Shown one piece after another: positions 19,601-22,600 of a stretch of DNA of 64,000 bases; position 1 is the stretch's first letter; each line of letters opens with the position of its first letter. The position numbers and the translations under genes are program-made. Under the pieces are notes generated by a model. The model had not been told where the DNA came from and searched no databases. It saw nothing but the letters and a program-made list of their open reading frames with translations. This DNA is from Macrostomum lignano (lineage: Eukaryota): the NCBI GenBank assembly GCA_002269645.1, contig NIVC01002133.1, positions 124,001-188,000 on the forward strand, given 5' to 3'.

Positions 19601-22600
19601 TTATCACTCGATCCCCGATCACTGCAAGTCCCGCGCCGTAAGCTTGCGTTACTTCCATGGTAGCGCCGGAGCTATGTTTATCTGTGTTGGATACGTTGGC
19701 ACTGGGCAGACACTAATTAGTGAGTGAGAGAGGCGAGAGGCTTATTGGAACTTTTTTACCCCAAGGGCCTGATGGAGAATCCAGCACATGATTGGGGGCT
19801 AAAAGAGGGGAGAGAGGATAGGGAATAGAGAATAGAGACGCGAGATGAGAGAAAGAAGAGACGAGAGAATAAAGAGGAAGAGGGGAGAGATGAAACAAGA
19901 GAGGAGAGAGGAGAGAGAAAAAAGAGGAGAGAGAGATAAAAGCAGAGGAGAGGAAAGGAGAGGAGAGGAGAGGAGAGGAGAGGAGAGGAGGGGAGAGGAG
20001 AGGAGGGGAGAGGAGAGGAGAGGAGAGGAGAGGAGGGGAGAGAAGAGGAGAGGAGAGGAGAGGAAAGGAGAGGAGAGGAGAGGAGGGGAGAGGAGAGGAG
20101 AGGAGGGGAGAGGAGAGGAGAGGAGAGGAGAGGAGGGGAGAGAAGAGGAGAGGAGAGGAGAGGAAAGGAGAGGAGAGGAGAGGAGGGGAGAGGAGAGGAG
20201 AGGAGGGGAGAGGAGAGGAGAGGAGAGGAGAGGAGGGAGAGGAGAGGAGAGGAGAGGAGAGGAGAGGAGGGAGAGGGAGAGGAGGGGAGAGGAGAGGAGG
20301 GAGAGGAGAGGAGGGGAGGAGGGAGAGGAGAGGAGAGGAGAGGAGAGGAGGGGAGAGGAGAGGAGGGGAGAGGAGAGGAGGGGAGAGGAGAGGAGAGGAG
20401 GGGAGAGGAGAGGAGAGGAGAGGAGAGGAGGGGAGAGGAGAGGAGAGGAGAGGAGAGGAAAGGAGAGGAGAGGAGAGGAGGGGAGAGGAGAGGAGGGGAG
20501 AGGAGAGGAGGGGAGAGAGGAGAGGAGAGGAGAGGAGAGGAGAGGAGAGGAGAGGAGAGGGAGGAGGGAGAGGAGGGGAGGAGAGGAGGGGAGAGGAGAG
20601 GAGGGGAGAGGAGAGGAGAGGAGGGGAGAGGAGAGGAGAGGAGGGGAGGGAGAGGAGAGGAGAGGAGAGGGGAGAGGAGAGGAGAGGAGAGGGAGAGGAG
20701 AGGAGAGGAGAGGAGAGGAGAGGAGAGAAGAGGAGAGGAGAGGAGAGGAGAGGAGAGGAGAGGAGAGGAGAGGAGAGGAGAGGAGAGGAGAGGAGAGGAG
20801 AGGAGATAAAAGAGAAGATAGCTGAAGAGACACAAACCCTGAGCGGGCCGGATTGCTATTATAAAGTTTCAAAGGACCCGAGGGCCGGATAGAGAGGCTT
20901 TGCTGGCCGCATGTGACCGGCGGGCCGGAGTCTGCCGACCCCTGGGCAGACGGCAGCTGCGGCATCTTTGCCCTCATCTAAACCCGCATTGTAACCCCAG
21001 TGCATCTCCTGGGGCTGCGGTTCAGTTAGGGGTGGCTGCACTGCTGAGGAATCTATCTGTACACGCTCGCGGCGATTGTGCAACTTTCAGGGCCTTTCAT
21101 GCTGGGGTTGCTGCGGCAGGGCGTTCATGGACGTCTGGGGTAGTCTTGGACTGGAAAGAAAGATAGATGTTGCCCCACACTTCTAAATTTGTTATAATTT
21201 CTCAATACTCATGCAGTTATAACCTGAATCGTGAAAAGTTATTGTCTTCAAATTCAGGATCGTGTTTCGAGGCAATATTTCCCGAGGGGGTCAGGTGACC
21301 TCTTTGACCCCCCTTGACCTCCTCAGTCAAAGAAAGATGATGAAAACTTCGTGTCGTTTGTCGTGCCCTTCGCGCCCATGAGGGCCAACCCCCCACGGCA
21401 CAAAGGGTGTACATGCCTGAAAATTAAAAAGTCAGGGTCCGGGCGGCAAGAGTTGAAAGAGCATTTCGCGAACGATCCGCGAGGTGGGGGGGGGGCAAAA
21501 CCGGAGCGAGAGACGCTTGCAGTGAACTGGCAGACAGAGAGAGCAGCTCCAGAGCCCACGGAAACACCTGGCCAGCGAGTCGCTCCTTCGCTTTCTCTTC
21601 TCTTTGAGCCCAGTGCCCCCCCCCCGTGCTGCCTTCCCTCCGCGCCTGTCTCTCTCGGATCAAGTCCGCTAAGCTCCCTATTAGGCCTCCAGCAAAGCCA
21701 GGGGAGGTTGGGCATCTTCCCCTTCATCCACGCCACCCACGACTTTCTCCCCAAGCCAGCCAACGGCAGTGAAGCAGCCGCAGGGGTGACGAATCCCCGG
21801 CAGAAATATCCCCATCTGGATCTTCTTCCCGTGGCCAGCTCCTCTCAATCTTGTGAAAGCAACCAGCTGCTCCCAACTCGAACTTGAGCGAGCATGGGTG
21901 GCTGGTGGTGCTTCGGAGGCGCAGCCAGGCGCAGGCAGAGGAACAGCTTCCTGGAGAAGAGCATCTACAACTACATGCTGCTGCCGTTCCGCTTTCCCGA
22001 TCAGGACTTTGAGCAGTGAGTTCCGCTCTGACTGCGGATGCCAGCTCGGCAGCCATATCCTCATCCCCGATCTCACCCGATCTCACCCTCATCCCCGATC
22101 TCACCCGATCTCATCCTCATCCCCGATCTCACCCGATCTCACCCTCATCCCCGATCTCACCCTCATCCCCGATCTAACCCTCCTCCCCGATCTAACCCTC
22201 CTCCCCGATCTCACCCTCATCCCCGATCTCACCCTCATCCCCGATCTAACCCTCCTCCCCGATCTAACCCTCCTCCCCGATCTCACCCTCATCCCCGATC
22301 TCACCCTCATCCCCGATCTAACCCTCCTCCCCGATCTAACCCTCCTCCCCGATCTAACCCTCCTCCCCGATCTAACCCTCCTCCCCGATCTCACCCTCCT
22401 CCCCGATCTCACCCTCATCCCCGATCTCACCCTCATCCCCGATCTAACCCTCCTCCCCGATCTCACCCTCATCCCCGATCTCACCCTCATCCCCGATCTA
22501 ACCCTCCTCCCCGATCTAACCCTCCTCCCCGATCTCACCCTCATCTCCGATCTAACCCTCCGCCCCGATCTCACCCTCATCCCCGATCTAACCCTCCGCC

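Follow-up and report, generated by a model that had tools for sequence, protein, structure and literature searches.

The Slo2 gene, its annotated first exon and a probable alternative

The stretch of DNA analysed here, referred to throughout as the window, comprises 64,000 nucleotides of the flatworm Macrostomum lignano (contig NIVC01002133.1, positions 124,001–188,000 of the forward strand; GenBank assembly GCA_002269645.1). It carries a Slo2 (KCNT-like, Na+/Cl−-activated-type) K+ channel gene, BOX15_Mlig014079g1, with a GenBank product of 1252 amino acids (PAA60613.1; P0269 in our collection). An initial annotation had named the gene as Slo2 and had proposed that an alternative first exon at 21894–22015 gives the channel a candidate myristoylated and palmitoylated N-terminus. 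The gene assignment holds: the product has the Slo2 set of Pfam domains (Ion_trans_2, Slo-like_RCK and BK_channel_a), with the Ion_trans_2 pore domain followed by two RCK-type domains, and according to phmmer its closest relatives in the PDB are KCNT1 structures (PDB entries 5U70 and 8HIR, both with E = 0), BK channels following only at ∼1e-34.

The locus record for PAA60613.1 (L002, same contig and assembly) is identical at every base to window positions 11894–54146. A chain of 21 exons with GT–AG introns, starting with 21894–22015 joined to 24306–24488 and ending at the stop at 44146, reproduces PAA60613.1 with every residue matching. The coding sequence of the annotated M. lignano Slo2 transcript begins with the segment at 21894–22015, called exon 1b here. 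It is discussed below together with exon 1a, which lies upstream of it. In the following list and in the text a slash within a splice site marks the exon–intron boundary.

16701–16819, plus strand: exon 1a, A-type (PRYRLRD), with its own ATG at 16701 and the donor CA/GTGAGT in phase 2; from the sequence and a motif search
21885–21887, plus strand: stop codon TGA, in the frame of the exon 1b ATG and 9 nt before it, read directly
21894–22015, plus strand: exon 1b, 122 nt, ATG-initiated, ATGGGTGGCTGGTGGTGC...GACTTTGAGCA/GTGAGT; 40 residues and two bases, phase 2
21894–21941, plus strand: tip of exon 1b, 16 residues, an aromatic cluster and then a basic run, with Gly2 and Cys6
21942–22015, plus strand: conserved half of exon 1b, with BLASTP and blastn matches to the paralogue and a HMMER match at its end
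22016–22021, plus strand: exon 1b donor GTGAGT, phase 2; the same hexamer is found at exon 1a and at the paralogue exon 1b
22016–24305, plus strand: intron between exon 1b and exon 2, mostly minisatellite (18-nt unit ×55 at 22076–23061 and 14-nt unit ×34 at 23346–23817)
24306–24488, plus strand: exon 2, joined by both first exons; acceptor ccccccag/A; 61–75% identity to KCNT1/2 of molluscs, arthropods and vertebrates
29271–44146, plus strand: the remaining 19 Slo2 coding exons, all introns GT–AG, the chain giving exactly PAA60613.1

Exon 1b reads ATG GGT GGC TGG TGG TGC TTC ... GAC TTT GAG CA, a run rich in TGG and GGY at its start, and its protein ends in DQDFE. Joined to 24306 it stays in frame and enters the conserved start of Slo2/KCNT proteins (VRVEFF). 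The ATG has a strong context (A at −3 and G at +4), and from the in-frame TGA at 21885–21887 it follows that 21894 is the true translation start, with no upstream coding exon read in. Exons 1a and 1b both end in CA/GTGAGT, in phase 2, and both are compatible with the acceptor at 24306. That exon 1b ends in the phase of exon 1a and splices in frame to exon 2, as first proposed, is thus borne out by the sequence and by the exact match to PAA60613.1.

The Mlig_3_7 GenBank annotation was built solely from RNA-seq and de novo transcript assemblies, with open reading frames called by TransDecoder (PMC5730564), and the 22015/24306 junction therefore has transcript-derived support. As the exon chain reproduces this transcriptome-derived product exactly, exon 1b and its junction are real and already annotated. 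TransDecoder takes the longest open reading frame of an assembled transcript and the support comes through annotation and not from reads, which leaves room for the view that exon 1b is a chance open reading frame beside a chance GT, or an annotation artefact. We find this scarcely credible. In the 7.5 kb between exons 1a and 2 no other ATG-started open reading frame of 30 codons or more runs up to a phase-2 GTRAGT donor, so that exon 1b does not stand among numerous chance candidates; three loci conserve it, donor and phase included; and its start is used in products of two loci in two annotation sets, a second UniProt entry (A0A1I8G986, P0271) also beginning with MGGWWCF. Exon 1b is thus already publicly annotated, and as an alternative Slo2 N-terminus it is previously undescribed.

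Exon 1a carries the conserved N-terminal motif PRYRxRD at 16701–16819, like mammalian Slack-A and Slick, as the initial annotation had noted. It differs from its counterpart in a near-identical copy of the gene (L003, introduced below) at 1 of 119 nucleotides, and has 71% protein identity to an exon at 4560–4670 of a diverged paralogue (L001), where the homologue likewise lies upstream of the paralogue exon 1b, has a TAA two codons before its own ATG and ends with the donor AG/GTGAGC in phase 2. Each exon thus has a start of its own and is closed to reading through from upstream, exon 1b having the TGA before it and the exon 1a homologue of the paralogue the TAA. No annotated M. lignano product among those retrieved includes exon 1a: two begin with exon 1b, and the others are truncated at their 5′ end. 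The label of 'alternative first exon' was therefore correct in that 21894–22015 is a genuine first coding exon, but was the wrong way round: in two M. lignano Slo2 loci the annotation takes exon 1b as the default start, and the alternative, which lacks annotation, is exon 1a. An alternative 5′ exon, at 16701–16819, thus seems to be lacking from the public gene models.

Each of the three M. lignano Slo2 loci has an exon 1a homologue, with a homologue of exon 1b downstream of it. The order A exon, B exon, exon 2 is found in the window, in the paralogue, in sandfly isoforms and in bird read-through models. An AG adjoins the base before the exon 1b ATG (gcgag/cATG, 21888–21894), and exon 1a spliced at this site would read ...DSD-H-MGGWW in frame. 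Such splicing would resemble that of the sandfly isoforms, which join A and B in one frame (...DDGER-MSMFFFRL...); the AG has a poor polypyrimidine tract before it and is missing from the paralogue.

Relatives of exon 1b

M. lignano holds at least three Slo2 loci: that of the window, the near-identical copy (L003, NIVC01001234.1) and the diverged paralogue (L001, NIVC01000872.1), the product of which (PAA75614.1, P0147) has 73% protein identity overall to the window product. The near-identical copy is a duplicate with 85–92% DNA identity through the introns. The conservation check, which had been asked for in related flatworms, reached this one species' gene family. Between the window and the near-identical copy exon 1b differs at two of 122 nucleotides, both changes being synonymous (CGC/CGG and GAT/GAC), compared with 32 differences in 491 aligned flanking positions (Fisher p = 0.044); the tip is identical in the two.

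Between the diverged paralogues, blastn matches in or near the 5′ region of the gene fall on three elements only: exon 1a, exon 2 and, of exon 1b, the 3′ half. All other matches are dispersed repeats, and the introns between exons 1a, 1b and 2 do not align. At exon 1b the match covers window 21954–22021 and L001 10103–10170 (84% identity), with the flanking introns unaligned. BLASTP aligns the second half of exon 1b to the N-terminus of the paralogue with 17 of 28 residues identical (E = 2e-13), and the annotated product of L001 likewise starts with its own exon 1b, with the donor CA/GTGAGT kept. The conserved part of exon 1b is its C-terminal half, which the initial annotation did not discuss.

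The first 16 residues of exon 1b are not alignable by BLAST to the paralogue tip (MSWWFARCREPTRRTGGGGGGFGRSNSKHKQ). The paralogue product starts MSWWFARCREPTRR, with Ser at position 2 and Cys at position 8 (MSWWFARC). Its DNA, ATG AGC TGG TGG TTC, encodes MSWWF, so that Trp-Trp stands directly after the start and is followed by Phe and a basic run, as in the window. We take the two tips to be homologous, in which case AGC (Ser) would have become GGC (Gly), with one GGT and one TGC codon added; the TGG/GGY-rich run looks slippage-prone. Gly2 looks like a recent change, limited to this gene and its near-identical duplicate. An alignment of the window ATG to an internal position of the paralogue (GGWWCFGG against GGGGGGFG) was rejected, as Trp-Trp follows the start in both proteins and TGG TGG is found in both DNAs.

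The N-termini of about 270 retrieved Slo2 sequences were listed. A recurrent alternative to PRYRFRD in molluscs, chelicerates, crustaceans and insects is M-[S/T/A]-x-x-[W/F/Y]-[F/L]-x-[R/H] followed by basic residues; the form used for testing was M-[S/T/A]-x(1,2)-[VFWYPIL]-[WFY]-[FL]-x-[RH] and then a basic or charged run. Distinct tips of this B type number 27, of which 25 come from outside M. lignano; position 2 is Ser (rarely Thr or Ala) in all of these 25 and Gly in none. Besides MSNVWFYR and MSMFFFRL, which match the pattern, examples are as follows.

Oyster: MSNVWFYHRSG
Abalone and vent snail: MSYVWFYRG and MSYVWFYRH
Clam: MSYLWFYH
Horseshoe crab (Limulus): MSNVWFYRLRHQH
Spider: MSNFWFVRKHPKERR
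Barnacle and Daphnia: MSNVFFFRL; barnacle MSNVFFFRLRSLRRE
Cockroach: MSVFFFRLHNLRREEE
Beetle and Diptera: MSM[FY]FFRLHNL[QR]R...; Diptera MSMFFFRLHNLQREE

The paralogue tip (MSWWFAR) fits the B-type motif with one residue missing. The window tip keeps WW.F and the basic run and differs from the motif by Gly2, of which it is the sole case beside L003, and by the inserted Cys. The position of the exon agrees. In the window and in L001, exon 1b is a single 5′ exon between an A-type exon and exon 2, ending in phase 2 before VRVEF; in Limulus (L004) the B-type N-terminus is a single exon with the donor AG/GT in phase 2, joined directly before VRVEFY, which is the same intron position and phase. The protostome B-type isoforms, which are database predictions, resemble exon 1b in being an alternative to PRYRFRD in the same genes, in having an aromatic cluster after the start and then basic residues, and in forming a single exon joined in phase 2 before VRVEF(F/Y), as checked in Limulus; they differ in that the window has Gly-Gly for Ser-x and the inserted Cys, and in that the rest of the exon is unalignable. 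With HMMER, the end of exon 1b (DQDFEQ) aligns with DSSFSQ, the end of the Slack-B-type N-terminus of chicken Slo2.2, a match that is suggestive but short. On these resemblances, exon 1b is most plausibly the flatworm representative of an ancient aromatic-basic N-terminus of Slo2, the B type, which serves as an alternative to the PRYRFRD A type in the manner of mammalian Slack-A/B.

Protostome Slo2 N-termini come in more than two types. Insects also have ...SRYSSYNCLTSWDSYDKIPR and ...RSMSAWSDISRSS..ER and oysters have MKNIRYHKVP...NYAYGSETNLER, and all of these extra types join directly before VRVE(F/Y)(F/Y). A Slo2 protein from a Logan transcript contig, assembled from public reads (P0199, 1163 aa), starts MGDNDGLEMRVPPLPPRYRLKDVILGD; its A-type sequence PRYRL[KR]DVILG is most like that of Macrostomum exon 1a.

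The failure of BLASTP and blastn to align more than the second half of exon 1b between the paralogues admits another view of the tip, namely that it has no function of its own, being a disordered and drifting leader, that only the C-terminal half of the exon matters and that the likeness to protostome tips is convergence or chance. The substitutions and the indel of ∼14 residues in the tip, in a protein with a core that is 73% identical overall and has long identical stretches, would suit such a leader, as would the repeat-like DNA. It sits less easily with the adjacent Trp-Trp, Trp being the rarest residue, that follows the start directly in both paralogues, or with the closeness of the paralogue MS-WWFAR to MSNVWFYR. 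The motif is, moreover, kept in molluscs, chelicerates, crustaceans and insects, and this breadth speaks for constraint on such tips generally. We regard a functionless tip as unlikely, although it deserves to be kept in mind.

Taken together, it is probable that two mutually exclusive ATG-bearing 5′ exons, 1a of A type and 1b of B type, swap the N-terminus of Slo2 in M. lignano, Gly2 being copy-specific. Several points weigh against this. The transcript support for the 22015/24306 junction is second-hand, coming through the annotation method, and exon 1a is in no annotated product, so that only conservation and homology speak for its alternative use. For kinship of the Macrostomum tip with the MSNVWFYR-type tips the evidence is ∼7 residues (the paralogue MS-WWFAR) and the exon position. 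Outside M. lignano, the middle and C-terminal part of exon 1b had no relative among 1.84 billion representative proteins searched with a profile, the hits that reach this segment being intron translations or unrelated N-termini. Exon 1b may have a promoter of its own or only a trans-splice acceptor. Finally, in the literature as searched, we found no functional test or published description of a B-type tip in any species.

Possible acylation or pore block at the aromatic tip

The initial annotation had claimed that Gly2, Cys6 and the basic cluster RRRQR form a dual-acylation and electrostatic membrane anchor. On this proposal the exon 1b isoform would be N-myristoylated at Gly2 and S-palmitoylated at Cys6 and, with RRRQR, would be held functionally at the inner leaflet. 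The elements are present: Gly2 is encoded (ATG GGT, 21894–21899), a Cys stands four residues after it and the basic run is next. After removal of Met, GGWWCF fits PROSITE pattern PS00008 (G-{EDRKHPFYW}-x(2)-[STAGCN]-{P}). The strong ATG context, the upstream in-frame stop and the unchanged tip in L003 are also in keeping with such an anchor. The residues around Gly2 have precedents, as N-myristoyltransferase (NMT) accepts HIV-1 Nef (MGGKWSK, with Gly3 and Trp5) and Fyn (MGCVQCK, with Cys6), and those residues are thus tolerated. NMT substrates are usually hydrophilic at residues 11–17, as exon 1b is.

What does not stand is the specificity of these signs. PS00008 is permissive: three of the nine distinct Slo2 N-termini in the sample that start with MG match it. 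Neither of the proposed acylation sites is kept within the family. Position 2 is Ser in the paralogue and Ser, Thr or Ala in all 25 other B-type tips; the Cys is residue 6 here and residue 8 in the paralogue, where its alignment partner is another residue, and the first 12 residues of most B-type tips contain no Cys. With an exon divergence of 1.6%, the two copies sharing the tip are too alike to reveal selection on Gly2. Trp at positions 4–5 is unusual for NMT pockets. In addition, a six-transmembrane channel needs no lipid in order to associate with the membrane. A functional lipid anchor therefore appears rather unlikely from the sequence, although acylation of this one isoform is possible. 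Because Gly2 is recent and confined to this gene and its duplicate, acylation would at most be a lineage-specific addition and not the conserved function of the exon.

The comparison that prompted the proposal is with the dual-acylated SH4-type N-termini of Fyn, Lck and G-alpha i/o and with the myristoyl-electrostatic switches of Src, MARCKS and HIV-1 Nef, in which Met-Gly, a nearby Cys and a basic cluster are found as in exon 1b. Those proteins are peripheral, need the lipid to reach the membrane and keep Gly2 strictly, whereas the window protein is an integral channel. In exon 1b, Gly2 and Cys6 are not kept even in the paralogue, and positions 4–5 are Trp-Trp. A search for a link of Slo2, Slack or KCNT1/2 to myristoylation or palmitoylation found none in the searchable literature, in agreement with the earlier statement that no lipid-anchored Slo2 N-terminus is known. 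The anchor, if real, would be of local interest only, as a peculiarity recently acquired by one M. lignano gene.

The shape of the B-type tip recalls a different device. Three or four aromatic or hydrophobic residues at the extreme N-terminus are followed by Arg or His and a charged linker of variable length (e.g. MSMFFFRLHNLQREEENKKKRK), and the tip lies ∼60–110 residues ahead of S1, which would suit an intrinsic ball-and-chain particle that gives Slo2 N-type inactivation or fast block, like the FIW tip of BK beta2. Inactivation by BK beta2 depends on this terminal hydrophobic triplet, and a structural correlate exists (PMC2217327, PMC11840039). The two are alike in the short hydrophobic or aromatic tip, the charged chain behind it and a Slo-family pore with a gating ring below; they differ in that the BK beta2 ball sits on an auxiliary subunit and not on the pore-forming subunit, and the ball has no sequence homology to the exon 1b tip. 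The likeness is one of resemblance only, no electrophysiology of any B-type isoform having been found, and no inactivation of Slo2 channels is reported in the searchable literature. As PMC3850776 describes it, mammalian Slack-B activates slowly and does not inactivate. Some sandfly isoforms carry the A exon in front of the motif and so have it internally, which fits poorly with a need for a free N-terminus; Gly2, if acylated, would tether the tip away from the pore. A blocking particle is, on balance, distinctly unlikely.

A further reading is that the B-type tip is an undescribed conserved module of protostome Slo2, either membrane-docking or a pore-blocking ball, and that the change from Ser to Gly has made it an NMT substrate in this gene. 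This is a long shot. If true, no lipid-anchored Slo2 N-terminus would have come before it, and tethering of the module to the membrane would amount to an experiment made by nature.

The rest of the window and a possible role of the exon choice

The coding exons downstream of exon 2, all on the plus strand, are positioned as follows.

29271–29348, 29839–29947, 30026–30100, 30177–30260, 31250–31693, 33115–33251, 33348–33411
33496–33604, 33684–33792, 34079–34228, 34738–34976, 35175–35411, 36190–36216
37339–37402, 38479–38829, 40645–41077, 41776–41931, 42381–42613, 43792–44146 (with the stop)

A 42-nt stretch at ∼27046–27087, flanked by AG and GT, would keep the reading frame if spliced in and would encode 14 residues followed by (Q), with a resemblance to the S1–S2 loop exon of the paralogue (CPFPYCHGC...). 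It was considered as a Slo2 cassette exon and rejected, since it is not in the annotated product, which uses 29271–29348 instead; it may be a decayed or alternative S1–S2 loop exon. P0095, an older model with a frameshift, extends across these positions, and further M. lignano UniProt models (P0149 and P0152) carry another S1–S2 loop sequence (...YCQYKCLNLTAIDSALTDADADIHW).

The 5′ introns consist largely of mini- and microsatellites (16824–18079, 18580–18791, 19849–20806, 22076–23061, 23346–23817, 25077–25789, 26691–27044 and 27355–28923). These include a 16-nt unit ×80, (ATCT)53, ∼950 bp of pure-purine GAGAG, the 18-nt unit ×55 and a 22-nt unit ×71, and are strongly strand-asymmetric, with a GC skew down to −0.62. 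Elsewhere, positions 46001–48000 have 66% G+C against ∼45–50% around them and hold an ATG-started open reading frame of 518 residues on the minus strand (46188–47744) without a Pfam match, and positions 8001–10000 have 35% G+C, unusually low for the window. Four long open reading frames elsewhere in the window have no Pfam match, and Rfam and tRNA scans of the window gave no match.

We return to the swap of exons 1a and 1b, which we hold to be the probable arrangement. The choice of 5′ exon would replace ∼40 cytoplasmic residues ahead of the S1/pre-S1 segment. It would be made either by a promoter of its own for each start or by a spliced-leader acceptor, the latter being an alternative for exon 1b because 38.8% of M. 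lignano genes are trans-spliced (PMC5730564). Exon 1b would then have two parts, a fast-evolving aromatic-basic tip, which is the flatworm version of the B type, and a C-terminal half that is conserved within M. lignano. The N-terminus as a whole might tune gating kinetics, trafficking or both, by analogy with Slack-A and Slack-B, and the tip may do so from a place at the interface with the inner leaflet or close to the cytoplasmic mouth of the pore. Aromatic-basic sequences like this one are of a type found at membrane interfaces.

The mammalian precedent is close in its layout. The initial annotation had pointed to alternative promoters A and B in mammalian Slack, and PMC3850776, in its summary of Brown et al. 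2008, indeed describes independent promoters for Slack-A and Slack-B and N-termini that by themselves set activation kinetics and heteromer trafficking in the rat isoforms. Mammalian KCNT1, like the window, has two ATG-bearing 5′ exons that join a common exon starting VQVEFY/VRVEFF, one of the two being of the PRYRFRD (Slack-A/Slick) type, and the bird read-through models (P0062 and P0099) place the A exon before the B exon, in the order found here. The systems differ in that the exon 1b tip has no counterpart in the bird and mammalian B-type sequences retrieved, and in that the differences in kinetics and trafficking were measured only in the rat isoforms, the arrangement in the window being known from sequence and annotation.

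The choice between Slack-A and Slack-B in mammals changes activation kinetics, firing adaptation and heteromer trafficking. The flatworm Slo2 gene has the same two-exon arrangement, and the B motif (MSxxWFxR and basic residues) is found in molluscs, chelicerates, crustaceans and insects; this sharing across protostome groups suggests that the A/B switch is old, at least in protostomes. The most useful by-products of the analysis are the protostome-wide B-type tip motif and the exon 1a that is missing from the gene models. The short N-terminal tip is an element that could be tested by deletion or swap in any invertebrate Slo2 that can be expressed.

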